Source of the DNA: Pecten maximus
Lineage: Eukaryota
DNA length: 64,000 bases
Assembly: GCF_902652985.1 (NCBI RefSeq)
Contig: NC_047016.1
Location: 28,086,001 to 28,150,000, forward strand
Direction of reading: 5' to 3'
The notes beneath the pieces were generated by a model that was not told where the DNA came from, did not search any database, and was given only the letters and a program-made list of their open reading frames with translations. This document shows positions 34,623-63,850 of this stretch, one piece after another. Each line of letters opens with the position of its first letter. Position 1 is the first letter of the stretch. Both the position numbers and the translations under genes were made by a program.

Positions 34623-37600
34623 GTTAGAGTCAAGGTCAGCAGACCTGCGATGTAGTAATGGGAAAGTCTTGTCATAAGGAACACACATGAAATATCAACA
34701 TTACTGACACACTTCAAACTAAAGACTATAGATGTCTACAGATGCCGACACCAAGGGTATATCAATTAGCTCCACTGGACTTCTGCCCAGTGAGCTAATG
34801 AACCTAGATCACTTGACCTGAGAAACCTGAAACATGATCTCATCTGAGGTATTCAAAAACTTAACTAAACCATAAAGAGTGTTCAAATTCATCAAAAGAA
34901 ATCAAGTCATTAAAGTTAAATATGAATTAAGGGAAACAATGGACATACATGGGTATTTGATATTCGTTTCGCCCTCCTCACTCACAATATGGCGAGGGTA
35001 TAAAAATATGTATTGATTTTTGCTCATTATATTGTAACATACAATATTGTCTTCAATATATTGTTTACTCTGAACAAGAAAGAAAAAAAATTATATATGA
35101 AACAAGAGGCCCAGAGGGCCTGTATCGCTCACCTGGATTTCATGAGATATGAAACAAGAATGATGATTAAGTATACTTGTCACTGGTATTGCTATGTCAA
35201 TATATCATAGGCATTTTATATGGGTATGTGAGGTTTTTATGCCAAAAAATGCATTAATCCATGAAATAAAATTGACTTTTGGCACAACCCCATAAGGATA
35301 TGCTACCACACAAATGTGAGTGATATCCATTGCTTAGTTTCAGAAAAGAGGTTGTTTAAACCAATTGACCCCTTTTGACCCTGCCCTCTGCACCCCAGGG
35401 GGGAGTGGGGGTCAGTTCCTTCCTTTATAAAATTTTGAATCCCTACCCAAAAGGATGCTACCAGGCAAATATGAGTGATATTTATTGCTTAGTTTCAGAG
35501 AAGAAGTTGTTCATATCAATTCAGCCAAATTGACCCCTCTTGGCCCCGCCCCTCAGGCCCCTGGGGGGTCAGCCTCACCATTTGTACAATTTTGAATCCC
35601 CACCCAATAGTGATGCTACCAGACAAATATGAGCAATATCCATTGCTCGGTTTCAGAGAAGAAGTCTTTTATATCAATATAGCCCAATTGACCACATTTG
35701 GCCCCGCCCCACAGGCCCCAGGGAGGTGGGCCCCACCATTTGTACAATTTTTAATCCCAACCCCAAAGGGATGCTCACAGTCAAATATGAGCAATATTTA
35801 TTGCTTGGTTTCAGTGGAGAAGTTGTTCATATCAATTTAGCCAAATTGACCCCTCTTGGCCCCGCCCCTCAGGCCCCCTGGGGGTCAGCCTCACCATTTG
35901 TACAATTTTGAATCCCCACCCAATAGTGATGCTACCAGGCAAATATGAGCAATATCCATTGCTTGGTTTCAGAGAAGAAGTCGCTAATATCAATATAGCC
36001 CAATTGACCACATTTGGCCCCGCCCCTCAGGCCCCTGGGGGGTCAGCTCCATCATTTGTACAATTTTTAATCCCCACCCCATAGTGATGCTACCAGGCAA
36101 ATATGAGCAATATCCATTGCTTGGTTTCAGAGAAGAAGTCGCTAATATCAATATAGCCCAATTGACCCCTTTTGGCCCTGCCCCTCAGACCCCTTGGGGG
36201 TCAGCCCCACCATTTGTACAATTTTGAGTCCCCACCCCATAGGGATGCTTCTGACCAAATTTGGTCAAATTCTGATGTGTGGTTATGAAGAAGAAGTCAA
36301 TTGTTGACGGACGGACGGACGACAGACGGACTTACGACGGACGCAACGGTAGGGCATAAGCTCACCTTGGTCCTTTGGACCAGGTGAGCTAAAAATGTGT
36401 TGTTGATGTGTATATATACATGTAATGATGTATATTGTACTGAACACGATTGGCTGTCATGCTGAAACCAGTTTTATAGTCATCTCCCAGCTATCCCAGT
36501 TACATAGATAAATGATTGTGTAATAGAGGACTTCAGGCTCTAGCTGTGACTTATCAATTTCCTAGAATACCAAGATGCTGGTGTATATTATGATGAAGTC
36601 TGATGTATCCACAATGCTGAATTATCATTAGTTAGTTGATTACTGGTTTATTGCCATCATGCCTATTGCTAGTTTCATCTTACCAACTATACTCATTGTT
36701 CTGTCAGCCTAAGGAAGTGGCTCTGTTTTGATCAGAGGTTCATAGACGGAAACGTTAACAGGTCTGTTATGTTATAACAGAACCTGGGAGTGGGTGAAGT
36801 TGGGCAACTCCAGTGAATGGTTAGGAAATGTGAGGTTAAAAATATATTTCTAATTAAATCTAGCTATAACATACCTAGAATGCCGAGATGCTGGTGTATA
36901 TTTCTGATGAAATCTGAGGTAAACATGGACATTTGGACATTCTCAGGAATACTGAATTGGTGCCTCACACCACCACAGACAACATGCTTGAGGCTTGAGC
37001 GTACTGCAAAAGTATAGTATGTGTGCTATGTCATTGGAAGCTAGAGATAGAAAATTAGAAATAATTACACTTATAGTAATATCTCAATTTATTATTATAC
37101 AAAGACCATGTAATAATGCTATTCAATAAACAAAGACAAGTACCAAACTTTGACGAAGAATTCTTTCCTATACTCTTTTCTGCCTGATAAACTTGCCCTT
37201 TAAGCATATATCCCAACCTTTTTTCAGAGTGCACTTATTAGCTTGAATACAGTATCATATTGTCAGCACAGTTCACTTATTAGGTCTAATACAGTATCAT
37301 ATTGTCAGCACACAGTTCACTTATTATGTCTAATACAGTATCATATTGTCAGCACACAGTTCACTTATTAGGTCTAATACAGTATCATATCATCAGCACA
37401 CAGTGCCCTTATTAGGTCTAATACAGTATCATATTGTCAGCACAGTGCCCTTATTAGGTCTAATACAGTATCATATTGTCAGCACAGTGCCCTTATTAGG
37501 TCTAATACAGTATCATATTGTCAGCACAGTGTACTTATTAGCTCGAATACAGTATATGTATCATATTATCAATGTGGAATTAACTACAGACATCTTAGAA

Positions 37601-38056
37601 CAATTAAGTGACAATTTTCTGGAGATATACTTAGTAACTACAGGAAGTTAAAAAATTGCTACTTACATTGGAGTCTCTCTCTATAACCGTCACACTTATT
37701 GCTTTTCGGCTTTGCTTCCTGATCCAAAATGCGGCAGCTGAACCCACGAGTCCCCCTCCAATAATAGCTATATCCGTTTGCCCAGGAACAAAATTATAAT
37801 CCGATTCGCTGCCTTTACTCATTGTTAACAGAGATTTTCTTACACGTCTACCATGTGCGGGATGAAGTTCAGACTCATTTTCGTTTTTTGGAGATTGACT
37901 TTGTTTTGAGTTCCTTTTTGCTGTGGTATCTGTTTCAGTATCTTCTTTATTACTACCCATATAACGTGACATCTGTGACCAGAACTGTGAGCAACATACC
38001 CTCTGTCTTCTTATCACACCGTCAGTGACTTTCTTGAAGATTATGGTCGACATCAT
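21760..38056 (-). CDS. FOXRED1: FAD-dependent oxidoreductase domain-containing protein 1 (mitochondrial complex I assembly factor); exons 38056-37667, 37003-36875, 34369-34270, 33248-33154, 31750-31611, 30751-30606, 26209-26074, 25254-25150, 22005-21760 (~495 aa if one 1-bp deletion in exon 2 is corrected)
   Basis: All introns GT-AG; phases consistent except for one missing base in exon 2. Motifs: [11 protein letters not shown] (FAD GxGxxG), VIERDSN|[88 protein letters not shown] - colinear with FOXRED1 as I recall it. Confidence 0.93.
22045..22240. mobile_element. Degenerate palindromic (fold-back) element end
   Basis: Imperfect hairpin: aaatattgcatg...gggagtttatg...atgtatatggacc / ggtccatatacat...cataaactccc...catgcaatattt. 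Confidence 0.5.
22991..24045 (+). mobile_element. Non-autonomous Helitron/Helentron-type element with ~169-bp tandem core repeats
   Basis: About 5 cores (gttgcc anchors at 23106, 23275, 23441, 23612, 23781), a (GACG/GGAC)n microsatellite at ~23905-23940, and a duplicated 3' hairpin cccc(c)taacttcgttgcgggggtat. A related 5' end stub lies at ~32518. Confidence 0.75.
25379..25960 (+). mobile_element. Degenerate Helitron-type non-autonomous element
   Basis: 5' aacaagagatcccagagggatc, about 2 decayed ~170-bp cores (caagatggcc at 25580 and 25730) and a (GACA)-like tract at ~25885; a related reverse remnant lies at ~14170-14480. Confidence 0.45.
26641..30298 (+). mobile_element. Near-intact CR1-group non-LTR retrotransposon in a FOXRED1 intron (antisense to the gene)
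   Basis: 14-bp TSD taataaagtctgcc at 26627-26640 and 30299-30312; long APE+RT reading frame; 3' end aataaaatatgtttaaag. Confidence 0.93.
26683..30115 (+). CDS. LINE polyprotein: 2A-like motif + APE endonuclease + reverse transcriptase + C-terminal Cys/His motif; split by a +1 A in the A7 run at 27961-27967
   Basis: APE motifs HLNVRS, CLTETHL, AGGG, YRP, GDLN, LDPI, SDH; RT motifs [38 protein letters not shown]; CSCG...HFLFEC. Removing one A gives [15 protein letters not shown]...KSYWRLIK continuous into the 28214-30115 frame (~1143 aa). Confidence 0.9.
31057..31628. repeat. 62-64-bp minisatellite (~9 copies) overlapping the donor of FOXRED1 exon 31750-31611
   Basis: Unit agttaacctaagggtactatgtaagtaactccttacaatggttagtgatatacctggagtcc at 31057, 31119, 31181, 31243 and onward. 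Confidence 0.95.
34467..34800 (+). mobile_element. Degenerate Helitron-type non-autonomous element
   Basis: aacaagag 5' start, aaggtcaa/gtcaaggtca-type core, 3' hairpin tagctccactggac...ccagtgagcta. Confidence 0.4.
35101..36395 (+). mobile_element. Helentron-type non-autonomous element carrying a 158-bp satellite array
   Basis: 5' aacaagaggcccagagggcc...gctcacctgg; cores spaced 158 bp apart (35492, 35650, 35808, 35966, 36124); (GACG)n tract at 36306-36345; 3' hairpin agctcacc...ccaggtgagct complementary to the 5' subterminal repeat. Confidence 0.85.
36562..36623 (-). pseudogene. Decayed partial copy of FOXRED1 exon 2 (3' part)
   Basis: acatcagacttcatcataatatacaccagcatcttggtattctag vs exon acctcagatttcatcagaaatatacaccagcatctcggcattctag; donor GT lost. 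Confidence 0.75.
37228..37568. repeat. 42-bp minisatellite (~7-8 copies)
   Basis: Unit cagtatcatattgtcagcacagtgcccttattaggtctaata. Confidence 0.93.
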
Positions 38057-44250: not shown

Positions 44251-47200
44251 TCAGCGGCCCAGCTGATTGTCGATTGCCAGACTGCCGTCAACACACGTGT
44301 TAGTAATGGGATCAAAAAAGTCCAGTCCGTTGTTGGTACAGGACTGCAAGTACATATGGCCCGTCAAATCACATTGGATATAGTGATGGCGATCACCAAG
44401 CACAGGGAAAAACAGTTTCGCGTGGCTGATGTGGTCCGCGTCACAGGGTGTAGTGAACAGGGGACATTGGCTACAGAAGGGATACGCCCCGTTGATTGAC
44501 GGCGTGTTAACCACCGGAAGTCCTATGGTTGGAGGCGCTGTCACAATGCCAGAAGGGTTGGTGACTGAATTTCCATTACAAGTTCCGGGGGCTGGTGTAT
44601 TAGGCACGAATGAGTTTGGATTTACGCATGACTGTGATGACTGCTGGAAGTAGAAATTTGGCGGATTGCATTGGCGTGTGAACGACTCATGCCAGAGATC
44701 ACACTGGATGTACTTCGTCGGGTCACATGGGTATGTGTACAGTAACGGGCCATCAGGAGCTCTAAGATGACAAGGGTTAGCAATATTGGAGGGCACGATA
44801 CAGGTCAACTCATGCTGGTCCCATTCCTCTCCTGTGGGACACGGTCGTACCCACGCCTTCCCCCACACGTCGCAGTGGATAAACTTGGTTACGTCGGACG
44901 GATAAGTGAAGAAAAACTTGTTCGCCAAGATTGCTTCTACTGAACAGGGATTTCCTATGGCGTGGGCGAGCGGGGTTCCTAATACGACGCAGGGTGTATC
45001 AGCACCAACACACTGCTTACAGGCATCATAGTAGGACTCGTTCTGGGGGCATTGTACCACATACAGCTTACCCTGGTTATCACACTCCAAGTATTTGGTA
45101 TGATCATCCGGATGTGGAAATTTGGTGATTCCAGCTAGAAGTGTTTCCTTGGTGCAGATATTGCCATAACCCCAATGTTCTGCAAATACAGAAATTGAAT
45201 GAAACTTTCAGACACATACTAAACATATTATTTCAATCAAGGTATTCAGAACATGAAAATGGTGGTGCTGTCTGTGAGCCATCTTCACTAGCCAAGGCCT
45301 CTGATTACGTTACACTCCATGAACGTTCGAGGAGTGTAACGTAATCAAAAGCCTTGGCTAGCGAAGATGTTTGTGAGCTTGCTCTTGCCTTCTTAATTAC
45401 TACACTGCAATACGTGTTAAATAATGCTCATAAAAATGTATTTGTCGCGACTACAGTATTGATGTCTGGGGGTGTAGCAGATCGTACATCAATCAATTAT
45501 CAAAATGATAACCAACCCTGTCTTATGATCTAGTCCTTTGTACTGCTATGTATCTTACCTTTACAGTCGTCTGGACACTTGATCTGTACGCCGTTCTGGT
45601 AGCATTTGATTTCTGTAAGAGAAAATCATCATAAGGATTCAAACAAACGAAGTTTTATTATTTGAATCATGAATAGGAACAACAGTCTTTCGACCAGAGT
45701 GTATATGATCGCAGGCTTCATACAGCAGTTAACACAGCTCTTTCTTGTTCTTTAAATAACACACTGCTGAGACCGTTGGTAAAATCAATCATGTCAAATG
45801 TATTCATGTTTATCGTTTACTTTCTTTCAAAAAACATCTATAGGACTTTAATAAAGATGCTTCATCTCTGAAAAACAGTAACTATGATAGATAGAAAACA
45901 AGGGCCGTTATATACATGTATTTATATACAAATCCAAAAGTTACAATGTAATTTACGCAATTATCACCCTCCAAACGTTTTCATCTTCTTTTTATTATCT
46001 TTAGAATTTAAAATGGAAAATCTCCAAAGAAATTCCATCGTACGTTTATGCATTTCTGTTTTGTATGATCCTTCTGGTTTCGTAGGAGATCATTTTAAGA
46101 CTATTTTATTCTACTTTCTTGGTGTTCACTAGATAAATGCGTTTTTATGAGACATTGCGTATATGTTGTCGGTCGGCGATCTCTATGCGGCGAATTAGAT
46201 AATACAGATGATAATTTATGTAATTACCATGGTCACGATGATCCCCATTGTAGGGCGTTACGTTGATGGTACAGCCCCTGGTCCCATTGGTCAATTTGAG
46301 TGCATCCCCTAAACCCATGAAAAGAGTCTGGGTGGTGGTAGTATTTCGGAACACGATTCCAAGATCAGTAGCCTCGGTTTGAGTTTGCGTTTCATAGTAT
46401 GAGTTTCCAGGGTATGGGCTCCCGAACGCCGTGAATAATGTGATTTTACCGCAGGTTACATTAGTCTGAAAATATAAGATATAACAGGTGATTACATTAT
46501 CTCTATAGAGAATAAGTAATGAAGGAATTGGATAAGTAATGGGAGAATTGAACAAGTAATGATGTATGGCTAAGGAATGGAATGGTGAACTGCATGATGG
46601 GAATGTTTAATTATTAGTTTTGATCCATTTAAAGTCTTAATTAGTAAAGAGAAACGAATAAGTAAGGATGGAATCGAATAAGTAATGGGATAAGTAATAA
46701 GTAGCGAATATGTAATGATTGAATCGAATGAGTAATGGAATAAGGAATAAGTAATCAATTTCACGGAGGTTCTCTATAGAGAATATCCAGCGAGTAACAA
46801 TTTGGTTAAAAGAATACGGTCTATAGTAAGTATCTAGCGAATGATAAAAGGGGATAAACACAATCAAGGGAAAAACTGTAAACACTATCTGATTGAGGAG
46901 GAGAAAATACATTTCAACCAATAATAAAACACAACCTTAGTTTTGATCATATGAAGTATGATAGCTTAATATCATTTCAAAATTACCTCTACAGTAACGC
47001 CTCCTGGTGGTGTAATGACAGCAAGGGGAGGGCACTCTTCCATAACACACGTGTAGGTGTGGTTCATTTTAATATATAAGGGTGCTGCCAAATAAAGAAA
47101 AAATGCAAAATATTATTTACACAATCAAATGAAAATAATTGAACTACTGCTTAGATTAGTCAGGAAGTCAAACTATGGTATGTAATTACTGACAACTGCA

Positions 47201-50200
47201 CCCGTGAAGGAATGTTTCAGTGTTTGACAGTATTATACGTTTTAGTCATATTTGCTGTCCAAGGGAAGACAAGGCGGGTCGGTAAAACTTGGTTAGCGAG
47301 GATGTGTTTTAAGTAAGACAAATACTCATTATTGCTTAAATATATCAAATACTAAATATTTGCCGCTAATAGATATATCTTTCTTATGATCTATCAATTA
47401 ATTGTCAAGTGCTGAATAGGGATGCATATTCATATTCTCTTATGTAATAGAAACATTTTTACATTAATGATGTAGTATAAGTGAAACTTAATTTTATGAA
47501 AACACATTACAAGTATACTGTATACACGATGCTTCCTCAGAGTAGAGAGGGGAGCAAAACTCATATCTAACTTAAGGACGTTGATCCGTTGGTTTTCGGT
47601 AGAGGTCATTTCTGCAATGTTTTGTGTATTTGGATTACAGTAGGGACTAGCCATGTCAACATAATGTTAAATACCTTTTACACTAAGGTATGATTATCTG
47701 TACACCTATATTCTCGTTACCTCTACATGTCTTTTCCTGAATCTCTTGTTTAAGAGCCGTCAGGTCAGTGAACCCAGACACCGTCATTACGTGTGTACAT
47801 GACGGACTTGTTGCGATGGCGTTGAGCTCGCCTTGATTGATATGGCTGCCCACACCAATTGTAAATGTGACAATGTTGTTTACATGGATGGCCTCGGCAG
47901 CGTGCAGTGTATTCAGGCGGTCATTGGAAGCGCCGTCCGTGATGACGATAAGGACCTTCACCGCATCCGTCCGGCTTCCGTGAGACACCTAAAATGGCCG
48001 TGAAGTACCATATATCCTTTTCCTCATGACCTAATTGGTACCTAATCCATTGCGTTAAGTTTTGGGATCAACTTATCTTTCTTACCTTTTTTCTTTAAAA
48101 AGCAACAACAAAAGCAAGCAAATTTGCAGTTAAATTTTTCATGTAATAAAAACTAATATAGCAAGCACATATATTTATATTGCTCAAAGAAACAGCTGGT
48201 ACTAGCCGATATGAACATGAAATTACTATAACAGGTTCTGGCCAATGCAACTTCGTTAAAGGTAAGACTAATTGGTTTGAGATCAATTTAAGCAGAGAGA
48301 TATCTATTTTTGAAGTGAGTTAGCTACCTGGAAGACCTCCGTCAATGTTTTCTTGAGAGCTTCGTCAGTTGCAGTGGTGCCACTATCAAATGGTATGTTG
48401 TCTATTGCAGTAGACACGTCGCTCTTGCTGTTGTACGTGTCCAGAAAAAACCTTGTAGTAGCATGTGTGGAGTAGGTCACCATAGCAACCCTTGTCTTGT
48501 CCGGCGAGACAGGGAAGTCGTTGATGATGTCCTGAATGAACATTTTCGATCGTAAATTATCATCGGCGGATAGACTGTTAGACTGGTCCATAACAAATGC
48601 CAAATCTATCTTCTTTGTGTTTGAACAGCCTAAGGAAGAAAGTTAACAAAAATCCTTTACTGTTCAATAAGAACAACAAGTCATAGCAAATAACAAGCAC
48701 ATTCTCAACCAATTATTTACATGTAGACAATTCCTTTGTCTTAAAAATTCAAAAGGGCATACATCCTTAAATTGAATTTAAAAAAGCCCATTATAGGTAA
48801 TATACAACGCAACGTAGACAACGCATGCATGTACATTGTATTACAGAGGAGTGTGTTAACAAAACAAATCTCCCTAGTTTACCATCTACGCATATGGTTA
48901 GCGACTATATCATATCCTCGCCGTAGAGAGCACTTGCCATCCATTCAATAATCACTATCAATTACACGTGATACAAAATGCCGAGTTACAATGAAGAATA
49001 TTCATTGGTTTATTTATTACGTTAAACTTTAGTTACTTTAATTTAAAAAAATCGGCAGATGGCTATTAGTAACATTTGGAAAAATAGTGAACATTTACAC
49101 TGATCATTGACAAAAAACAGCACGTGTCTATAAATTCACACAAAAAAACAATCTATACTGAATTATACCTACCTTGGGCAAGTATTTCTGCAAGATTGGT
49201 GAAATTGTTTCCACCCATACTAAGGAAATTATTGGCAAAGAACTGGCCCTGGTCCTCGATCCGCCATCCCACGCCTCCATGTATCTTTGTGAAGAGAGCG
49301 GCGGCTATCCCCGAGTACAGTGGCTTCCTAAGATCATTCCAATTTACCTCGCCCCAGTCTATATTGAACTTCTGCACAAGCATGTCATATTCGTGGAGTA
49401 GTTGATTGTTGTATTTCGTTTCCAGGAACTTGGGAAGGCTTAACTAATAATGAAAAGGTTGAGGAACATTAAAAGTGAACCTGGTCTGTCAAAAGAGTTA
49501 TTAAGTTGTATTTAGTTACATGTATATAATATTGACAGTTATTATATTTAAATGGATACTACAGTGTTAGTACTATTTATATGACGTAACAAAGACATTT
49601 TTATGTAAGCTGTTGTCAAACCAGTTACATTTAACATAAATCCTTAAAATTAGCAATTGATAGGTTACTGATAATGTCCATATAGGGATTGAATGGGTTA
49701 ATTTGTCATTTTCATTGCGGCTATGAATAGCAATAGCTTTACAGTTTCCAGTCTTTTTTTATTTTTGCTTTTTGCTTTTTATTCAAATAATGTCAAATAC
49801 AATAATTCGTGTTAAATTATATCTATTTTATGTGAATAGCAAAGAGAACGAAAACCATGTTTTCATGCTGTATTCATTGTGTGTTCATGGTCAAATGTTT
49901 GCTGTTTCAATTTGGTAACTTCATACAAAGAATGAACACTCAGAATATAAATATATTTAAGTAGTAACATTAATTTTCCGCTTTTTGTGCTGAAAGCCTT
50001 CCGCTTGATAATGAATGCGCTAATGGCACTAATACAGGTATGCATCATTGTGCTAATCTGTTTTAACCCAATTATAGAATAAAATTTGATTGTACAAAAA
50101 TATACAAACTACAGTATATGATTCTTTCATTTAATACTTACCTGCCATATACCTCCATCAAAACCAGGGCGGTACGTCTTCGGGTCGGTTCCGTCGTAAG

Positions 50201-50390
50201 ATTGGACGTACGCCAGACGCCGTAAGAAGCCTTTGTCGTCGGCAAACAGGCACGACTCTCGAATCCTGGAAACAACTGCTTCGACCACATTCGCACCATT
50301 ACCCCCGGGTTGCATCGTCTGATCCAACCCCAGGGTACCTACTATCACACCAGCACAGAAAATAGACACACACACTGCTATAGTATTCAT
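44251..50390 (-). CDS. Secreted multidomain protein, paralog A: signal peptide + lysozyme/SLT-like domain (Gln at putative catalytic site) + VWA + beta-rich domain + 4 chitin-binding type-2-like repeats; exons 50390-50142, 49443-49173, 48629-48328, 47988-47721, 47084-46987, 46465-46228, 45612-45559, 45179-44251 (~802 aa)
   Basis: All 7 introns GT-AG and phase-consistent. Hydrophobic N-terminus MNTIAVCVSIFCAGVIVGTLG; VWA DLAFVMDQSNS (DxSxS)...GTTAT...VLIVITDG...FTIGVG; four repeats of NPC-x-FPHPxDxTKYIxC-x-C-x-C in the last exon. Confidence 0.9.
45280..45369. mobile_element. Short palindromic MITE in an intron
   Basis: catcttcactagccaaggcctctgattacgttacactcc / ggagtgtaacgtaatcaaaagccttggctagcgaagatg inverted arms. 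Confidence 0.65.
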
Positions 50391-53300
50391 CTTTGTAAAT
50401 GAATAATAGAAGCAGTGTGAAGTCGACGTATGTTATTCTTATCAAAAACTTCCTTGTTAGAGAGTCAACCAAATGTCATAGTCACTGTGTAGGAGATAAT
50501 GGAAAGCATATGTTGATGCACGAGCGGAAGCGTCTTATGTATGACTTTTTCGCGTGCATGCATTCTGATGATCGTAATTACTTATGTAACCAGCTTTAAA
50601 AGCACGTGCTAGTAGGACGGTACATCACGCTCAGGATGATCTGTACTTATATGAGTCATACATTGTTACTTACTATCTTATATTAAATTCCTATTTAAAT
50701 ATGTTATTCACTTTTTTGTCTTCTGTTGAGTTCTGTGAGACACCTGTGTATTTGAACTTGTCGTTATTTTGAAAGAAAACAATTATAAAACATATTACGT
50801 GATTTATTTCTACGTTCTTTGTAATTGTCAGTAATTCGTTGATAGGGCGTATGGTATCGCAAACGTATCCTACACTATCATTCCTTTGAATTAAATTTGA
50901 TATTTACTTTATCACCAAGAAAACGCTTATGTTGAATAACTGATTGTCACTATTTATATTGTTGTCATATGTGGGGATGTAGATCAGACAAATACTTCTT
51001 GTATATGGGCAGGGAAGAGCAATGAGTCTTACTGTGGTTGCCATCTGCTAAAACATGTCGGATTGACATTTTCCTGTTATGCCTTCAATTGGAAATTATT
51101 TATCTCAGTTCCATTTACTTAATTGTTTTGCAGGAGATGTATTGTCCCCAATTGCAGTATCTTGGTTGTCGTCAACAATCGGCCGAATTGTTGCGACTGG
51201 AATATATTCCTGGCTGTCAGATGTCAGCTAGTACTGATGACCTCTCCAAAGGACAAACTCTGATAAACCATTCCTCCAATGTGATGTATTTTCGCATGTG
51301 ATGACGTGTGTATTTATAATCCTACACAGGCTTTATCTTGGTTTACCAGCCCGCCTATAATCAGGTATTTTACACATTGTTAGTCACGTTATTCTAGCTG
51401 TTATACACAGACTTATTTGTGTACATTGCTGATTTTTTTTATATTATATTATTCAATCAGATACATGTAGGTAGATAAAACACAAGTTGTGATATCCAGC
51501 ATTATCTAGGACTGCCCTCCTGTCGCAGAACATTTCCTGCATTACTTTTTAATGTAAAAGGCTTATTTAGCTAACAAATATATCCAACAGTTTGCACCTT
51601 TTGCAACACAGTTACAATAAAAGCAACAGGTTATAACCACTTACATGTATTTCATAGCTGATGTTACAATTAAACACTCAACTGCTTGTGTGGTCGAGTA
51701 ATACTCATTATTAACGGGTTAAATGTTCACTATCGCGGCCTTTCGGCCGTTCAGTGGACGAGTCATCCAATTACACCAAACGTCACAGGTATAACTACTA
51801 ATGTACTGGCGTGTTAAACGGTATGAGTCAACCCCGTATGTAATCCAGTTACACTCAACTTTGTAGTCATAACTCATGTTACCGGCGTGTTACACAAAAA
51901 TCATCTCCTAAGCCATTTACACTAAACTTTGTAGTGATAATTACTGTCATCAGTTAACCTAAACTAATCGGCATGTAATATATTTGTAAATATGATGTAA
52001 CCAATCACATTATATTATAATCCGCCAATAGGAATTAATCTACGTGTTTAAAGTATAGTTTTACAATAGTCTTTATAATGTTTTTATCTATTTGATAGAG
52101 TTAACTCCGTTATGAGAACTATGAAAGGTGATAAGACAACAGCCTGTCTAAAAAAAACGCGTGACATTGTTCCACATTCATACTTATCGATATGAAAGAC
52201 GGATTCGAGTGATTTTACGTATGTTACCTTTCGGATCTTATCTTAATAAATGTCTAGACATTGGCCTTAGCATCACTACTTAGCATACGTCGGGTGAAGT
52301 AAAGTTTAATTACCTGGATTACAATTAAAATACTAATTCATTTGGTTATACGGATCGCTTTGGTATGTTTTGTATTGTGATTATTTGTGCGTCAAGGGAT
52401 ATTTCAGGTTTTAAAAATGTTTGAGTTTATTAATATAAATCTTAATACGATGAGTAAATAGCTTTAAAGAGGTTCACATGAAAACCTCTCATGCATGATA
52501 AGATGAAGAAAATAAGAAAATGCCTATGCATCATTCACAATAAGATATAGTGCAGGTAAATTGTCTAAGAAGTTAAAATTGAACCTACTACAGTATGTAA
52601 CAGATCACATTATAGTAATTACGTATTGGTGTACAATCATCTCCACCCAGATATTGCTAGAGACATGCGCCATATTGACATATTAAACAGGCGCATTTCA
52701 ATTTAAATGTTGTATGAGGGATATATATTTAAGCGTCTTCTATGATAGAATTCAAGTAAATTTTCGTTTTAAATGCTTTATTATTATTTTGTTATATTTA
52801 TTCTATTTCATATGTTTTGATATTTTAGATTTTTAAATGTTACATGGTGGACATATATTAATCTAATAACCGATTATTAAAAAAAAGACAGAAAACTTGA
52901 CATTTAAAAACCAAATTCAAAATTCTTTTTTAAAGTACGAGGGAACTACAAACAAAGACATAGATGCACGAAGACCATTGAAAACATACAAAGGGAATGC
53001 GACCATGTGCTGTAATAGGGTAAGCGTCTTCGACGTCATCGACGACACCTGACATTTAAATCTAGGTACAATCCTTATCACATTCTCAAAACCATTCTCC
53101 AATTGGTAAAGATCGCATGTATATTTTTTGTCCATATTCTGTGGTTGTATTCATGAGTTTTAACGAAAGAATTCATAATTAATGATATAAAAGTACTGTA
53201 CATGGAAACTTACTTCCACAGGTTTTCTGATTAAATAAATGTTTCCTTTGCTTTGCTGTGTCCAGGTTCCATGTTGTGGTTTTGTAATGAGTTATCATTA

Positions 53301-53697
53301 TATCTATATATATATTTTATCCATAAAGCAGAAAGTTAATCTGATCTCCTTTCCCTCAATAAATGGAAAATAAAACATTGGTGTTGTAAAAAATAGTTTA
53401 TTACGTAGCTTTAAATGTTTAATGATACATTTGCATTGTATAATGCAATATCTATCTAGCTAATGTGGAACTGGGTATATCACATTCATGATATAACTTC
53501 GTTATCGTTACCAGTTGGTGAAAAAGTAATACGATTCTGTCACAGTGATGATGGATTTTACTGAATACGGCCAACATTTCTGTAATCATTAATAACATGC
53601 TGCTTTCACTTTTACTACATATTGTCATTCAGCCATAAGTCGGACATTGATTGTTGCTGATAATTTCTGTTCATGACTCAAGAAAATTGCCTATTGT

Positions 53698-56600
53698 TTA
53701 TTTTTTGCCTACAACTGGGACGGGAACAGTACTCATGACGAACAGACCTCTTGGCACGCAATTGAGGATATCCTGCCTCCAAATGAAGTAGGGTTTGCAT
53801 ACTTTCTCGAAGGCGTCTCCATACTGGTCACAGTGAATATACTTCTGGGGATCACTGGGATGAGGGTAGAAGAAAAGATCAGGAACGGTTCCACATGGCT
53901 TACTGTTAGATCCAAAGGAGCCCTTGGTGGGATCTACAACAACCTCTCGGTACAGACAGGTGAGTGTGGCCTGGTCCCAGAAGTGGTGAGGATCGCAGAA
54001 CTTCACCACAGCAACATACGGGAGATTGTAGCATTCGATGTATGCCTGATCATCGTTAGGATATGGAAAGAAAAATAGTCCATTTAGAATGTTTTCTGGT
54101 GTGCAGGGGTTGCCAGTCTGGACGACAGCGTTCGTTGGTCTTGGTGTAACTGACGGCAGAGGGGTCATGGTGGTCCTGGGGAGAGTGAAGGTCATCGGCA
54201 TTCCTGGTACACACGTCTGTGCCTGAAGATCAAATACTTCCATAAATGGACATAGCACTTCAAACACGTTACCATGTCCATCACAGTACAAGAAGCGGTC
54301 GTTCCTCAGAGGGTGTGGGAAGATCTGGATACGACTGCCTGAGCATGGGTTGGGGATAGCTGAAAAGAAAATCAGGTTTTTCCGTCATAAAAATGAAAAA
54401 AAATCGATTTAAGATATCTTACTATACGTTATATCGCTCCCATGATATATAGAAACGTTTTTCTCTACCTTAAAGCACATGATATACCGATATAATCCAG
54501 GTCTCAAATTTACAACTCTATACGGTATATCGATATGTCGTGTAAACACGAATTCCATGCAAACATGTCATCTCGGATTGAACTTGAAGAAATCATAAAC
54601 TAATTGGATGATGTTTTCATCCTTCTTTATTAAGGAGACGATATTTCTCCTTTTACAAATAATACACCACTATCAGCATAAGTTTCCTATGTTGTTATAC
54701 TTACAGTACGGTGGAGGGACAATCATGTACTGGCTACCGAAAAGTGTCTGGGCTGAGCAGTTGACAATGATCCGTCCAGCTTCTATACACAATAGGTTGT
54801 TATCTACAACACACAAGGCGTAGTTAGAATTTGCCTGGGTAATATTATATATGACTTTGGGTTCTTTGGATAATTAATGTCAATAGAACTTTAAATAGGT
54901 ATACGGATTGCTGTAACATCACTATAATGCCCCGTTTCATCCATATTCCTTAATTTAAGTCCAGAATTTAAATAGAAAAGTTTAATTGGATTTAACGGCA
55001 AAGAATAGTTAAGGAACTATCCTGTAATAATATGCTTTCCTATGACAAATTTTAGTTGAAAAATTAGCTTAACTTAAGGAGGATTGATGAAATGTTTGAT
55101 AATACTTACATGGTCGGATATTGTTTCCCTCCTCTACTGTAATGTTAAAGTTTCCGGCACACGTCTTGGTAGGGTATGTGGACATGACGGCCAGAGCCAC
55201 TGACCTGTTACCCCTCACATAGAACGACTGACCAGCGTTGATGTCGGCGATTTTGTAGAACTCATTCAGTACAGGACTGGGGTTTGCTGACGTCAGAGAT
55301 CCAAACACTGAGACGGTGCCATCAGTTGGTGTGATCTATATACCAGTAAAAGTTAATTTAATACTGAGGAATTACTTCAACATAAGTCATAGAGGGTCCC
55401 ATTTGTTCTTAAACAACTCTAGTGCGTACGGATTTTATGCTTTAAGTTGCCATATATGCATACTGTACACGTTCATATTTTAGCGGTTATGTTATTTTAG
55501 GGATTTTTGCGATTGAAGCATTCTGCTAAGTTATGATTGCGCTAATTGCACTTTCGATTAAACTGTTTCTATATTAAACAATATTAGCGCGCCAATTCAT
55601 CAATGCGCTAATCTGTTAGAATTTGAAAATGCCCCAAAAATTGAGTGCGTCAAATAAAAGAACGTTTACAAGTATGCTGCTCAAATATTTTATTGCAAAT
55701 TTAATGTTTTCTATATGTGTTAAATACTAAGAGGCGTGGTAGGTCCTAGCTCACATTTACAGTTCTTTACATATTTTCAATCAAACAATTTAACATTTGA
55801 TTTCTTAATATAAATTCAACTTCATTTTATGTGGTTTTGTTGTTTAATGGTACGTTTCATTTGACTTATATGGCTGCTGAGATATCGTCATGCTTTGTCG
55901 TAAAACATCTCTTCAGAATTTCTTGTATACAGTTTGTTTCTTGTTGTTATAATGTTCACTCCCTCTGTATGTATTTAAGCATTGAACTGTTTTTGTATGG
56001 TATTTATGATCTATTATGGTCGCGTGTTTTTTGGCAAACAAAATAGTACATGGAAAGTTTTTTTAAAAACTCAATTTTGTTAATCATTTGATTATCAACG
56101 TAATGCACAAATGGCATATTTTTCATAACAAATAATGTAGACAAAATAATTAGTCGTTAAACTTAATTATCCTGGATATTGTTGTTCCGGTATGTGTTGT
56201 ATTAATACGCTGATAAGTGTAGCGCGTGATGGGTGGCATTTAAAAGTACATCAACGCCAGAGCTCTCAAACAGACTACTAGTATATAGTGACAATGCCAG
56301 ACAAATGTAAATATTGAGCTACCAACACCGGTATCTTACCGTGACTGTGGTGCCTGCTGTGATGTTGGGTAAGATCTGCACGTTGATGTCACTTCCACAA
56401 TTGTACTGGTAGTTGTTTGGGGTCAGGATGGCGGCGGCTATAACATATCACCATGTCTTCTCTCATATTGTATATTAACAAAGAGTTATGCCTTATTAAA
56501 TTTCTTGGGGATATATTGAAGCCGCATGTATCCAGACAATTTCACTGCATTAAAGTCCAGTCGCTTCCCGTTTCGTTCTACCCATGTCATCGCCCTAGCA

Positions 56601-59600
56601 CATTATTTTCTTAACAAATTTAATGATACTTCATAAAAGTGTAGTGGAAAAGTGTCTCTAATTAGTTCTTAGTTCAGGATGTAAAGGTCAATTACTTCCT
56701 ATAACAAATATTTTGATCAAATGATAAAGATGTAATGTATACTAGCATGTCAATACGTCTTAATTCAGCACACTTATATATATATATAAATGTGATTACA
56801 TCTCAAGGGAACAACCAACCAATTGAAAAAAAATATATTTTTGAAACAGCCCCTGTGTATAGAAAGTTGAGCCAAGGATAAAATGTCTGGCAGCCACTGA
56901 TTGGCCAGTATGTTATGAAGTGAGAAAATAGATATGTAGCCTGATAGGTAACTATCAATAAGAAATGTTGATATAAATTTCGTAAGTCCGATTGATTTTT
57001 TCCCAAAAGTTGAGCTGAAGGACTCAACTTTTTTTTTGATTAGGTGTTATATCAGACCCTAAATTTTTGTTATAAACCATAATTGTCATATTGAATTCAA
57101 GAATTTGAATGAAATACTCCAAAACGTTAACACTAAGGTCTATGGGAAAACAATTGGTTGGTTGGTCCCTCAAAGTTGTTCGATACAATATTACGGAGAT
57201 ATAACGTTTCACGCGTTTCATTTCAAAAGTATTATTTCTTCCCGCCAGTTATCAAGTTATTGCTGCTATCAAAACTGTTCTTTATCACAACCCCACGATA
57301 CTGTGCTCGGCATAGATATATAAACCCATTCGATTTCTGGTATTAGACACTTATGTATTCATATGAATTAACGCGATACACTTTTTAACACAGTCTGGGA
57401 CATATTTACTTACCTTTACATGAAACACTCTGGATTTCAGTTTTCAGACTGTCCAAGTCAGCGTAGCTGTTGAGAATTTGTGAGTGAGTACAGCTAGGAG
57501 CACTGGCAATCCCGTCTAATTCGATCTACAAGTAAGTATTTTATTGTTTGTTTTAGCTGAATGACGAACAATGACTTTAATTTAAGTTTCGAGATTGGGG
57601 ACATCCGTATAAGGGGGATGACCATGACGCCATCAGATTTATTAGATTAAATCATCTTTGGAGTCGTACCAACACCACAGGACAGAGTTGCCTACCTTGT
57701 TTGCACTTTGTGTGACTCCGAGCGTGAAGATGGTAATTCCACTTCTTCTGGCGTTGTTGGCAGCAATTTGTGTGTTAACTGTGTTTTCTGACCTACCATC
57801 AGTGATCAAAATCATCACCTGTATAACAGAGAGGACAAATGTTGAAGTCGGTTTCTACTCCAAACTTCCTTTCCCATGACATGTTCTATTGTGTCTAATG
57901 ATTTTAAACTACCGTGGACATCTTAGTGTATCGATAGTTCGATGATAATTGTAAACTGCTGTGGCCATTGTAAACTCACGTGGACATTTTACTATATTCA
58001 TAGTTCGATAATGATTGCAAACTCCCGTAGACATATCACTGTATTGATAGTTCGATGATAATTGTAAACTGCTGTGGCCATTGTAAACTCACGTGGACAT
58101 TTTAAAATTAAATGGAAAGATTGAGAAAAAGATCACCGAGTAGGGTGAGAGTACTTTACAGAATGAGAGTACGGTGTAGGGTGAGAGTATCGGGTATGGT
58201 GCGAGTACTTTATAGAATGAGAGAATCGGGTAGGGTGAGAGTACTTTATAGAATGAGAGTACGGTGTAGGGTGAGGATATCGGGTAGGGTGAGAGTACTT
58301 TATAGAATGAGAGTACGGTGTAGGGTGAGGGTATCGGGTAGGGTAAGAGTAGTTTATAGAATGAGAGTACGGTGTAGGGTGAGAGTACCGGGTATGGTGC
58401 GAGTACTTTATAGAATGAGAGAATCGGGTAGGGTGAGAGTACTTTATAGAATGAGAGTACGGTGTAGGGTGAGGGTATCGGGTAGGGTGAGAGTACTTTA
58501 TAGAATGAGAGTACGGTGTAGGGTGAGGGTATCGGGTAGGGTGAGAGTACTTTATAGAATGAGAGTACGGTTTAGGGTGAGAGTACGGAAGGGATAGATT
58601 TATTCTCACGGCGATGCTAATGATATCATGTACTTGAAGAAACCATGAAGATAGACAAAGTGAATATATCCCCAGAGTTGAGATTACTTTTATGTCCACA
58701 CGGAAGAGAATTCTTACATAAACCTAGCAAAGTGTTGGACGTTTACCTTAGCCGCACCGTTCCGTGCACCATTAACGGTAGAGAAGACTTCATTGACGGT
58801 TTTGTCAATGGCGGCTGCAGTATTGGTACCGCCTGGACTGTAGACAATACCATCGACCGCCTTCTTTACTGCATCCTTGGAATTGAATTGGTTCAGCAGG
58901 AAAGAGGCCTTAACAGCTGTGCTGAATTCTACCACTCCAACACGAACAGTTTGTGTTCCGATGTCGAACTGGTCGATCACATCACTAACAAACTTCTTTG
59001 TAATGTCAAAATCGGTAGGAGACAGACTAGCTGAGCTGTCCAGGACGAAAACTAAGTCAATAGCATTGGTGCTGCGACATCCTGTCAACAGAATCAGGGA
59101 TGGTTACTGTAATTACCGTGTACAAATAACAAAGATAAGTTCTGTTTCTTATATAATGTGTATAGCTTTCATTGATCTTCATTTACTCGTTGAAATATGT
59201 ATGGAAAAGAAATAAATTATATCAAAGCGGTGATGAGGAACTATTCCAGGTTCTGACTTATTTGTTCGGAATTAAAGCCCAAAGACAGATCTTCTTTAAA
59301 TGTGCATGGCATTATTATGTTCAATTTGATGCCTGCATCATTACTACATCTTTAGCTTTATTTCGACAAAAGGAAATTAAAAGATATGTGGTCATTTTCG
59401 TTAAAATGTTAATGTGTTTAAAAACAATTACAAAACATTGTTACCAATAACATTGCCTGGTCTGTTCAATGCATATAACTAACCTCCCTGTAACTCGTTT
59501 ACTGCACTGTAGTATGCATGGGCCTCAAAAATGGTGTGCTTGGTGGTGTTGATCCAGAATGAGCTCTGCTTCTCCACTGAGCTTGGAAGGGAATCCGAGC

Positions 59601-61735
59601 CCGCCTTCAGGAGCGTATACAGAGCTGCAGCCACCCCGGAGTAAAGAGGCTTCCTCAGGTCCTCCCACCTAGCGGCTGACCAGTCGATAGTAAGAGTGTT
59701 CCTAAGGAGAGCCCTGGCTGTAGCCAGCATCCCAGACGTTTGTGTCTGTAGGAACTGGTCCTCGTCAATCTATGTATAGAAATCATAAAATAAGTATAGC
59801 TAGTGTAAAATTCGGTTTTACGTTAGGATTTATAATAGCAGTCAACATCAATATACTAATTCCATTTCCGTGGTAGAAAATGGTATAAATACCATATTCA
59901 ATAGAAAGGAACATACCACTTTATTAGTTATAATTGTGAAGAGTTTCAACCCTTAGATTTCCGTCTGCATGATATCGAGATGACACGGCATCAAACGTAT
60001 TGCCTTACTTTTTAGCTAAATTATCAAGGTATAATAGGCTTGGTTTGGTGTTGCTTTCTGTTCAGCTCAGCAACAGCCTTAAATTATAGTATAAATATTT
60101 TAAAGGTATTGAGTTGATCTTCTATAGTCCTTTCTTTCACATTCTGAACAAATATAGTTGAAGATACGTTCGATAAATCTAATTTAGACAGTGCTGCTTC
60201 AAATATTTAAATCATGTGTGTTCAGTTAATCTGCCTTAGGAATATCAAAACTGAAATTGATATCGAAATGTATCGGATATTGATTGTAAGTTACATACGG
60301 AAGAACAACGATAAGATGAACAGTATCAAATGCGAGATCATTTCTATGATACCCTGATGAAACAAGAAAATGTCTATAGTTTGATATCTTCTAAACAGAA
60401 GCTAGCGAAATAAGATTGTTTAGTTAAGTTACACAACATACCAATATACATTTATCATTCCCCTAGTTTCGTACTATAAAAACTACGATATACATGACAC
60501 GACATGTTTGGCCACAATGTTTGACCTGTAGAAAAATAAACATAGATACATCAACGAGGTCTTCCAGTAATTTAAGCATCCGCATGGTAAAATATTTACC
60601 ATTGTATGGCACTGCCACTATATAACCCTACCAATTCAGTTGCGAGTTCACAAGCTTTTGAACTGCCAACTGAAATTTGAATTTGAAAATTTCAAAAAAA
60701 AAATCGCACGACAAATAAAAAATCGCAGATGGTAAATATAAGCATTGAACGGCTTTCAGTTGGCATTCATAGTCAATATGAATGCCAACTGAAAGCCGTT
60801 CAATGCTTAAATGAACTACAGGGTTTACCGTAATTCCCAGTAGATATTATTAGTAATTATCATTATTAGGAAAGTGATTTTAAAACGAGATTGAAGTAAA
60901 CTATATTGTGTTTTATCAATGCTGCCGATACAAGATCTTGTTCATAAATACTGTTAACATATTTTAGCGATAATCCTGTTTAAGTGGTTTTCACGTTAAA
61001 AACGTTCTGCTGAATGATGATCGCGCTAATTGCAGTTTCTAGCAATGTGCTCCAGAATAGGTACGTTTACGGTAGCTTGTTTATATTTGAGATAGCCGTT
61101 TCATTGAACCTTAAGGTTTATTAAATGGTAAAAATAATAATAATGATAGCAATAATGATACAATAGTTTTATCATATTTCTGCCTAGCTTAGTATCATGT
61201 GTCTACATATAATCATAATACAACTTAGGAGTTGCACAGAATCCTAATCCTTACTGTTTGTATACATATATGTTATTAATTGACACACACCTGTGATTTG
61301 CATATGCATTTATTACAAGATGTTTATATACCAAATATCGAATATAGATAACCGCATCATAAAGTCATTTTCGTCCATCTGACTATTCAGTAGTGCTCAA
61401 TCAGTAAATGAGTGAAAATCCAGAAAACATGTACACCCATACAAGGACGTTTGAAATGATGTCCTTTTGTCATACTAACAACACTAACTCACCTGCCAAA
61501 TTCCACCATAGTACCCGAACCTGTAGGTGTCGTTAGCCGTACCGTCCTTGGATTCAACATATGCCAACCTTCGGAGGTAGAGTTTGTCGCTTGGGAATAT
61601 ACAGGACTCGTGGATGAGATTGATCACAGCCTCCACTACGGCAGAGCCACTGGCCTCGGGAACCCTTGTTTGATCCTGTATCTGGCCACTACACAGATAC
61701 ATCAAGCCCAAACCTAACAGTATTCTTGAAATCAT
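53698..61735 (-). CDS. Secreted multidomain protein, paralog B: signal peptide + lysozyme/SLT-like domain (Glu retained) + VWA + beta-rich domain + 3 chitin-binding type-2-like repeats; exons 61735-61493, 59769-59484, 59081-58747, 57818-57696, 57525-57414, 56437-56340, 55335-55110, 54803-54705, 54359-53698 (~727 aa)
   Basis: All 8 introns GT-AG and phase-consistent. Signal MISRILLGLGLMYLCSG; YLRRLAYVESKDG...GGIWQ|ID; VWA DLVFVLDSSAS...GGTNT...VMILITDG; three NPC/KPC...PHP...C...C...C repeats with a Pro/Thr-rich linker. Confidence 0.9.
57910..58102. repeat. Degenerate intronic tandem repeat
   Basis: gatagttcgatgataattgtaaactgctgtggccattgtaaactcacgtggacatttt occurs at ~57932 and ~58046, with partial copies between. 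Confidence 0.7.
58141..58590. repeat. 18-bp-monomer minisatellite (~25 monomers) with higher-order 54/36-bp arrangement
   Basis: Monomers tagggtgagagtacttta / tagaatgagagtacggtg / tagggtgagggtatcggg; lies in an intron of paralog B. Confidence 0.93.
60571..60812. mobile_element. Third (inverted) copy of the fold-back element at 20855-21350
   Basis: Reverse complement of ~21190-21350 plus the terminal hairpin taagcattgaacggctttcagttggcattcata...tatgaatgccaactgaaagccgttcaatgctta. Confidence 0.85.
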
Positions 61736-63099: not shown

Positions 63100-63850
63100 A
63101 TCGACAACACGAGAGCAAAATATGAACAAAAACTTGAGATTGGCATGGATACTCTTGAAAATGTAGAAGGAGAATACGACCAGGTGTTCCAGTAGAGTAA
63201 GTGTTTTCTGCTTCATTGACGACGACCGCCTTACAAATCTAGGTCATAACGACGACCGCCATACAAATCTACGTCATGACGACGACCGCCATACAAATCT
63301 AGGTCATGACGACGACCGCCATACAAATCTAGGTCATGACGACGACCGCCATACAAATCTGGGTCATGACGACGACCGCCATATAAATATGGATCATGAC
63401 GACGACCGCCATACAAATCTAGGTCATGACGACGACCGCCATACAAACCTGGGTCATGACGACGACCGCCATACAAATCTGGGTCATGACGACGACCGCC
63501 ATACAAATCTGGGTCATGACGACGACCGCCATACAAATCTGGGTTAAGTCAAAATCTCAAAAAATAGAACTAGAAAGATGACAACGGGACCACTGGGCAC
63601 TTCATGAATCACATGATACGATAGAATACTTCCAAATCAGATCATGATACGGACCATGAAACCTCTCCGTGGTATTTATCAACATGCAGCTTCCGTCGGC
63701 AGTCTACTTCTGTAAAGGAAATCGTGGTAATGACAATAAGTCCTTGAATTTCGAATAAACTGAGACATGTTAACACTGTCGGTAGAACATATGGATCCCA
63801 CTGTCTTGAAATTGAAAATTGGGAAATGAATTAATCAGGTCCATACAGCT
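63100..63850 (-). mobile_element. Degenerate Penelope-like retroelement 3' remnant; related 3' end at ~52960-53060
   Basis: Minus-strand SQFIRNSRTYCHYHDFLYRSRL (~63690-63765) resembles the SQLIRYAR..S...DF..R motif I recall for Penelope-type RT C-termini; 63150-63225 is similar to 52975-53050. Confidence 0.45.
63218..63544. repeat. 30-bp minisatellite (~11 copies)
   Basis: Unit gacgacgaccgccatacaaatctaggtcat. Confidence 0.96.

Follow-up and report, generated by a model that had tools for sequence, protein, structure and literature searches.

A tandem pair of lysozyme-like, VWA and chitin-binding genes in the scallop Pecten maximus, with glutamine in place of a putative catalytic glutamate in one copy

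Several proteins built on the folds of lysozymes and chitinases are pseudoenzymes, among them alpha-lactalbumin, human LYG1 and chitinase-like lectins such as YKL-40. Molluscan shells and other chitin-based matrices contain scaffolds that combine VWA with chitin-binding domains, and the cutting and remodelling of chitin in these matrices are poorly known. Two neighbouring genes of the scallop Pecten maximus, here called A and B, are considered below. They lie in a window of 64,000 nucleotides (contig NC_047016.1, positions 28,086,001 to 28,150,000), which is free of any N. Each encodes a secreted protein in which the signal peptide is followed by a GH23-like domain of the lysozyme superfamily, about 150 amino acids long (the N-domain), then by one VWA domain and three or four peritrophin-A (CBM_14) repeats. 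At the position of the putative catalytic residue of this domain, B possesses Glu and A possesses Gln. Based on sequence comparison, a structural model and analogy with known enzymes, the odds tilt slightly toward B being a possibly catalytic, ancestral form and A a non-catalytic glycan binder.

In overall plan, A and B are similar to the Pif and BMSP proteins of the shell matrix, which likewise are secreted by molluscs and have peritrophin-A repeats after a VWA domain (PMC11291548). The same two domains, PF00092 and PF01607, were found in A, B and their orthologs. In A and B, unlike Pif and BMSP, the VWA is preceded by a folded domain of about 150 residues, of which the survey of these proteins makes no mention (PMC11291548). 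The PifS1 subfamily has a long insertion between signal peptide and VWA, and A and B were considered as possible members. This assignment was not established, and the PifS1 inserts before the VWA are of low complexity (PMC11291548). Neither a laminin-G nor a Pif80-like region was seen in A or B.

The closest structural counterparts of the N-domain are the GH23 enzymes (SLT, PF01464), including Escherichia coli MltE, Slt70 and the Ralstonia A-471 chitinase, which gave the best structural matches (Z 7.7-8.3 over 113-129 residues). The N-domain family has one Glu that closes a helix and precedes Ser, and this Glu may correspond to the catalytic one of GH23 enzymes; in both, G-[IL]-[WM]-Q-[VI] comes 14-20 residues further on. 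When the Glu of GH23 enzymes is mutated to Gln, the proteins are inactive and still bind chito-oligosaccharides, and A naturally has Gln at the putatively corresponding position. Unlike GH23, the N-domain family is animal-borne, stands N-terminal to VWA and CBM_14 domains, and has no detectable sequence homology to the enzymes. A is also comparable to the known pseudoenzymes, in which a paralog loses its catalytic acid, keeps its fold and remains under selection in a binding or regulatory role, as is predicted for A. Human LYG1, for example, lacks both catalytic residues (PMC11576321). The present case differs from these in that databases do not annotate the family, that the loss recurred at least 10 times and that the Gln and Glu copies stand in tandem with otherwise the same architecture. 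Text searches of the literature returned no paper on the gene identifiers and nothing relevant on shell-matrix proteins with a domain of lysozyme-like or transglycosylase type. Lysozyme-fold pseudoenzymes are already a known kind; the novelty here lies in an animal domain family that lacks annotation, in the domains fused to it and in a recurrent loss of its site that can be dated.

The codon at 50204-50202 of gene A (minus strand), inside LRRLAYVQSYDG, is CAA, and the surrounding protein reads LRRLAYV-Q-SYDG. Its counterpart in gene B, at 61555-61553 (minus strand) inside LRRLAYVESKDG, is GAA and reads LRRLAYV-E-SKDG. Both codons are as the original prediction had read them, and the flanking motifs that it described as conserved are present in both genes. 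Exon 1 terminates in GGIWQ at a GT donor in each, and the second exons have IDW....W.DLRKPLYSG.AAAL in common. Over the mature part of exon 1 the two proteins are 63% identical, and over exon 2 they are 32% identical. Two further positions in exon 2 differ between A and B. Exon 2 of B retains an Asp (GAC, 59766-59764) and a Trp (TGG, 59556-59554), which in A are Ser and Phe. A and B are ancient tandem paralogs.

Nothing was found to favour the view that CAA reflects faulty sequencing or assembly or an allele private to one individual, or that A is a pseudogene in decay. The complete spliced message of A was recovered from two RNA sets, X11 (as a single contig of 2780 nt) and X6. It defines eight exons and a coding sequence of 2409 nt that specifies 802 amino acids and a stop codon, with GT-AG borders in all introns. 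Because the spliced product exactly matches the public protein P0151, annotated as 'uncharacterized protein', gene A is Pecten maximus LOC117321712. Between 50142 and 50420, not one letter differs in the RNA contigs of X11 and X6 (the latter to 50369) or in the DNA contigs of X5, all of these being Logan contigs rather than raw reads, which show presence and not allele frequencies. X5, X6 and X11 come from separate studies, and both sets of RNA contigs splice exactly at 50142|49443. A second DNA run, X4, has no change at the CAA codon among the rows listed. The codon is thus confirmed in spliced RNA of two studies and in DNA of another sample, and the earlier description of A as otherwise intact is correct. 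Since CAA occurs in independent contigs, Gln is found at this position in eight species, the 802-codon frame with its GT-AG introns is intact, and the ratio of nonsynonymous to synonymous substitution (dN/dS) is low (see below), the probability of an error, a private allele or a pseudogene is close to nil. The CAA codon is genuine rather than an assembly artefact or a private allele, and A is not a pseudogene but a gene that is transcribed and correctly spliced.

The N-domain stands at the N-terminus of A and B and is unannotated in databases. The structure that AlphaFold predicts from an alignment of 12 sequences for P0114, a homolog that shares about 45-50% of its residues with A and B, is all-helical, with a predicted local distance difference test score (pLDDT) of about 95 over residues 41-205. 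When this model was compared with 48,161 chains by VIA-align, 49 of the 50 best rows listed were lysozyme-fold or closely related glycan-cleaving enzymes. The best was MltE-E64Q (Z 8.3, root-mean-square deviation 3.5, 128 aligned residues), followed by a fungal muramidase (Z 8.0), phiKZ gp144 (7.8), Slt (7.7-7.8) and the GH23 chitinase (7.7), a Z of about 8 being 'middling' for helical models by the tool's own scale. FlgJ, GH19 chitinases, g-type lysozyme and destabilase are also on the list. Foldseek returned nothing from the PDB at E <= 0.001, and its weak rows included the GH23 chitinase, phiKZ gp144 and MltE. In the protein atlas, the nearest named clusters were SLT, Lys and GH134. A lysozyme-like fold of the N-domain is well supported by the modelled homolog, because the VIA-align list is uniform and the alignments cover the whole domain, and the resemblance is at the level of the superfamily only. 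It stops short of membership in GH23, for which no match at the sequence level was found. A six-frame search of the whole genome with PF01464 likewise gave zero matches.

A 52-column profile of exon 1, searched against 1.84 billion representatives at E <= 1e-3, detected 635 clusters of the N-domain family, counted at 50% identity. The named members are from molluscs (bivalves and gastropods), the annelid Owenia and the tunicate Clavelina, and nearly all are called 'uncharacterized protein'. In every member with visible gene context, the N-domain is fused to a VWA domain. Homologs of about 200-240 amino acids were considered as standalone enzymes and rejected, since their contigs contain a downstream VWA open frame. 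Two loci on eukaryotic ENA metagenome contigs (L010:3001-4423 and L011:3001-5448) illustrate this. Their homologs of 209-241 amino acids are single-exon N-domains followed by a VWA open frame 270-1000 bases downstream, and the N-domain is intronless in that clade. Because the VWA frame follows, these short homologs are fragments of multi-exon genes, produced by prokaryote-style gene calling on eukaryotic contigs.

The Glu of the family corresponds to residue 81 of the model, at the C-terminal end of helix 73-82 (helix 2). It is followed by Ser or Thr in all 120 aligned domains, and G-G-I-W-Q-[VI]-D lies 16 residues past it. The signature of GH23 is E-S and then GLMQ[IV], or GLMQVD in goose lysozyme, with the same spacing as in the N-domain family. 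Offsets of the aligned ranges carry the catalytic residues E64 of MltE, E478 of Slt70, E503 of Pseudomonas aeruginosa Slt and E141 of the chitinase to model residues 79, 79, 79 and 82, respectively. The original prediction had called Glu-to-Gln the standard substitution that inactivates lysozyme-fold enzymes and leaves binding intact, and the matched PDB entries bear this out, with MltE-E64Q in complex with chitopentaose, Slt E503Q, and the GH23 chitinase E141Q in complex with a tetrasaccharide. For hen lysozyme, PMC11576321, which cites Malcolm 1989, gives 0.1% of activity left in E35Q. Offsets and motifs are consistent with the family Glu being a putative catalytic residue, short of residue-level proof.

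The distribution of residues at this position among the 120 domains was uneven, with Glu in 79, Gln in 14, Ala in 10, Met in five, Val in four and a few others. On a family tree obtained by a quick search of about 150 columns, parsimony indicates that Glu was lost at least 10 times, and one large clade retains it in 19 of 19 rows. In rows without Glu, the conservation of Asp54, which follows GGIWQ[VI], falls from 0.71 to 0.37, and that of Trp124, in Q..[FY]W, from 0.90 to 0.39. Besides these, two hydrophobic columns lose conservation. The other conserved columns, namely G1, D21, LRR, A29, G36, GGIWQ, W82, DLxKPLYSG and Q120, are unchanged. Across the family alignment, Glu, Asp and Trp look like a single site.

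The same alignment can be read in another way. The entire N-domain family may be a non-enzymatic module derived from the lysozyme fold that functions in glycan binding or protein interaction, where Glu is one of many binding residues and Glu or Gln tunes its specificity or affinity. A and B would then not be split into an enzyme and a pseudoenzyme. Conservation is 66% in the Glu column and exceeds 90% in some 20 others, a pattern that a binding module could show as well, and at least 10 independent replacements of Glu have been tolerated. The fusion to VWA described above is an adhesion or scaffold setting. In addition, a sequence link to GH23 is absent. Pfam searches at E up to 10, with exons, full-length orthologs and 12 homologs, assigned the N-domain to no family. 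When PDB sequences were searched with an N-domain profile, chance matches alone were returned. With hhalign, the probability of a match to the C-domain of Slt70 was 0.6% for a single sequence and 0.2% for a profile of relatives, and the single-sequence alignment was discarded as having landed on a spurious AFVES elsewhere in Slt70. These observations weigh against a catalytic role of Glu in B, as do the middling Z scores and the placement of the Glu equivalence by range offsets and motifs rather than by residue-level superposition. When loss of Glu was tested against loss of Asp or Trp in phylogenetically independent pairs, three supported pairs were available, too few to reach significance. 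However, where Glu is lost, only two further conserved residues of polar or aromatic character go with it, as if a discrete site had been abandoned. Moreover, there is the large clade in which Glu is invariant, and the spacing of E-S ... G-x-[IL]-[WM]-Q-[VI]-D parallels the GH23 motifs of Slt70 and goose lysozyme. On balance, a wholly non-enzymatic family is the less likely reading, and a serious rival all the same.

The history of gene A can be followed in a clade of 16 bivalve rows, with a support of 99 in the Shimodaira-Hasegawa-like approximate likelihood ratio test (SH-aLRT). The non-pteriomorph rows of this clade, which include named heterodont or unionid orthologs from Sinanodonta, Mactra, Dreissena, Mercenaria and Mya, have Glu and Trp in eight of eight and Asp in seven of eight. 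In the pteriomorphs, all eight rows sampled have Gln, and in all eight Trp is replaced by Tyr or Phe. Saccostrea and three mussel rows, two of them named Mytilus, possess Gln, Asp and Tyr, and the four scallops possess Gln, Ser and Tyr or Phe. This split between pteriomorphs and the other bivalves places the change of Glu to Gln and the loss of Trp at the pteriomorph stem and the loss of Asp at the scallop stem. The Gln of A is thus ancient, predating the divergence of oysters, mussels and scallops. B and its relatives, including two Mytilus-type rows, have kept Glu, Asp and Trp.

Selection on these genes was estimated exon by exon with the Nei-Gojobori method and summed. For A, dN/dS was 0.05-0.15 in the N-domain (dN 0.06-0.12), 0.04-0.07 in the VWA and 0.05-0.10 in the CBM_14 region, and for the N-domain of B it was 0.07 against Argopecten only; all of these ratios are rough, which tells against the proposed split, since dS between scallop genera is about 0.6-2.3, near or above 1. 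The middle part of A (wrong frame), the N-domain of B against Mizuhopecten and Ylistrum, and the VWA of B against Mizuhopecten were excluded. The excluded comparisons of B had matched paralog A because the Mizuhopecten and Ylistrum loci are without the first exons of B. The N-domain of A is nevertheless clearly constrained and under purifying selection. Whether orthologs of A in related bivalves keep Gln under such selection had been raised in the original prediction, and the eight pteriomorph orthologs together with the low dN/dS of the N-domain answer in its favour.

This constraint could also mean that A is still an enzyme, which employs another acidic residue or acts by different chemistry or on a different substrate, so that Gln marks a change of mechanism. 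The N-domain of A is constrained as strongly as that of B, and four scallop genera differ at no more than a few residues in the nearly invariant mature part of its exon 1. Against this, three residues of the site are changed in A and not one, the aligned segments of the A clade contain no conserved new acidic residue that could compensate, and a change of Glu to Gln abolishes activity in lysozyme-fold enzymes where tested (PMC11576321; matched PDB entries). An enzymatic role of A is therefore improbable.

The favoured interpretation is that B, because it has kept the ancestral trio of Glu-Ser, Asp after GGIWQ[VI] and Trp in Q..[FY]W, is a candidate glycan-cleaving form. Chitin is the likeliest substrate because of the fusion to CBM_14, and peptidoglycan is possible. 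A, with Gln, Ser and Phe at the corresponding sites, would most likely not cleave and may instead bind glycan or act as a scaffold, with its four CBM_14 repeats anchoring it to chitin. As in established pseudoenzymes, key residues of A are replaced with the fold kept, along with GGIWQ, DLRKPLYSG, Q120 and the remaining conserved columns, and the gene is expressed and under purifying selection.

A third paralog of P. maximus has the same architecture of N-domain, VWA and CBM_14 (loci L002, L004 and L005) and lies on another chromosome (contig 13, 13859406-13859561, plus strand). It has Gln (LAIVQSDDG) and retains Asp (IDEAKF) and Trp, and its Argopecten ortholog P0061 has Gln too. The best reading is that the third paralog may be partly a non-catalytic binder as well. 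Two of the three scallop paralogs thus have Gln and one has Glu. The original prediction had proposed a split between enzyme and pseudoenzyme for A and B. The lysozyme-superfamily fold, the intact, transcribed and selected state of A and the fixation of Gln in Pteriomorphia agree with this proposal, and its limitation to one pair was too narrow.

A broader generalization is put forward tentatively, as somewhat less probable than its opposite. The N-domains may represent a previously unrecognised animal family of the lysozyme superfamily (the 635 clusters, without a Pfam model), N-terminal in VWA and chitin-binding matrix proteins of molluscs, an annelid and a tunicate, whose Glu-type members are glycan remodellers built into the matrix and from which long-lived non-catalytic binders arose at least 10 times. 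If this is true, lysozyme-like domains of such scaffolds become candidates for the remodelling activity, with the Gln-type copies as controls, provided by nature, that only bind. The family also offers a clean comparative case of a pseudoenzyme arising in steps: Glu and Trp went first and Asp followed, in a process spanning hundreds of millions of years. If the whole family is inert, the finding shrinks to an unannotated structural domain of modest interest.

The features of both genes are collected in Table 1. The original prediction had also credited A with one additional chitin-binding repeat, and the last exon does contain four CBM_14 stretches in A and three in B, counted at a per-stretch E up to 1. 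In the introns of A, at 45221-45420, 46421-46820 and 49621-50020, the DNA runs show a summed contig depth that climbs from about 35 into the thousands or tens of thousands, and loose ends are numerous; these stretches are high-copy interspersed repeats. At three positions in exons of A, 48345 (A>G), 48348 (T>C) and 46382 (A>T), all four runs (two DNA and two RNA) differ from the reference, and at these sites the reference may reflect minority alleles of the individual, or errors.

Table 1. Positions of genes, exons and site residues in the window
Feature	Positions	Strand	Basis
Gene A, LOC117321712, 802 amino acids: signal peptide, lysozyme-like N-domain (Gln), VWA, linker, four CBM_14	44251..50420	-	spliced RNA contigs, Pfam
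A exon 1, coding sequence (5' untranslated region beyond): signal peptide and first half of N-domain, ends GGIWQ	50142..50390	-	RNA contigs
A, CAA = Gln at the putative catalytic Glu position of the family	50202..50204	-	codon, RNA and DNA contigs, 8 pteriomorph orthologs
A exon 2: second half of N-domain (LSLPKF...NIDW...W.DLRKPLYSG...)	49173..49443	-	joint 50142|49443 in RNA contigs
A, AGC = Ser; Asp in 71% of Glu-type members (GGIWQ-[VI]-D)	49438..49440	-	family alignment
A, TTT = Phe; Trp in 90% of Glu-type members (Q-x-x-[FY]-W)	49237..49239	-	family alignment
A exon 3: VWA	48328..48629	-	PF00092 E 3e-21, 6e-15 across exons 3 and 4; RNA joints
A exon 4: VWA	47721..47988	-	PF00092 E 3e-21, 6e-15 across exons 3 and 4; RNA joints
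A exon 5: linker, no recognised domain	46987..47084	-	RNA contig joints
A exon 6: linker, no recognised domain	46228..46465	-	RNA contig joints
A exon 7: linker, no recognised domain	45559..45612	-	RNA contig joints
A exon 8: four CBM_14 (peritrophin-A) repeats and stop codon	44251..45179	-	PF01607 E 1.9e-16, 4 stretches, 22 Cys
Gene B, about 726 amino acids by homology: architecture of A, Glu type, three CBM_14	53701..61735	-	exon limits from homology only
B exon 1, coding sequence, ends GGIWQ	61493..61735	-	sequence, homology
B, GAA = Glu, putative catalytic residue, E-S motif, end of helix 2	61553..61555	-	codon, family model
B exon 2 (IDEDQF...), Asp and Trp kept	59484..59769	-	homology
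B VWA exons, about 58738-59091 and 57693-57821	57693..59091	-	PF00092 E 1e-29; homology
B last exon: three CBM_14 repeats	53701..54357	-	PF01607 E 2.4e-13, 3 stretches, 12 Cys
Exons resembling a D-amino-acid-oxidase gene (PF01266), next after A	about 36860-38053	-	similarity to the gene following A in other scallops

Gene B was placed by homology as nine stop-free pieces that are 70-97% identical to the Argopecten and Ylistrum orthologs (tblastn with P0003 and P0176). The gene order of B, A and D-amino-acid-oxidase is the same in Argopecten, Mizuhopecten, Ylistrum and the Pecten window, four scallop genera in all. The intron between the VWA exons of B contains a minisatellite at 58140-58586 with a unit of 54 nt in about eight copies and higher-order periods of 90, 144 and 198. 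The open frames that it creates on either strand are long, at 161 and 188 amino acids, and are not genes. Upstream of B, a tandem repeat at 63217-63544 (30 nt in 10.9 copies, 94% matching) likewise produces repeat-made open frames on both strands. In Argopecten irradians, the chromosome record that contains P0002 and P0003 also contains an extra B-like copy, P0177, of 527 amino acids. Its N-domain is 96% identical to that of B, and its precomputed Pfam matches include a C-type lectin (PF00059).

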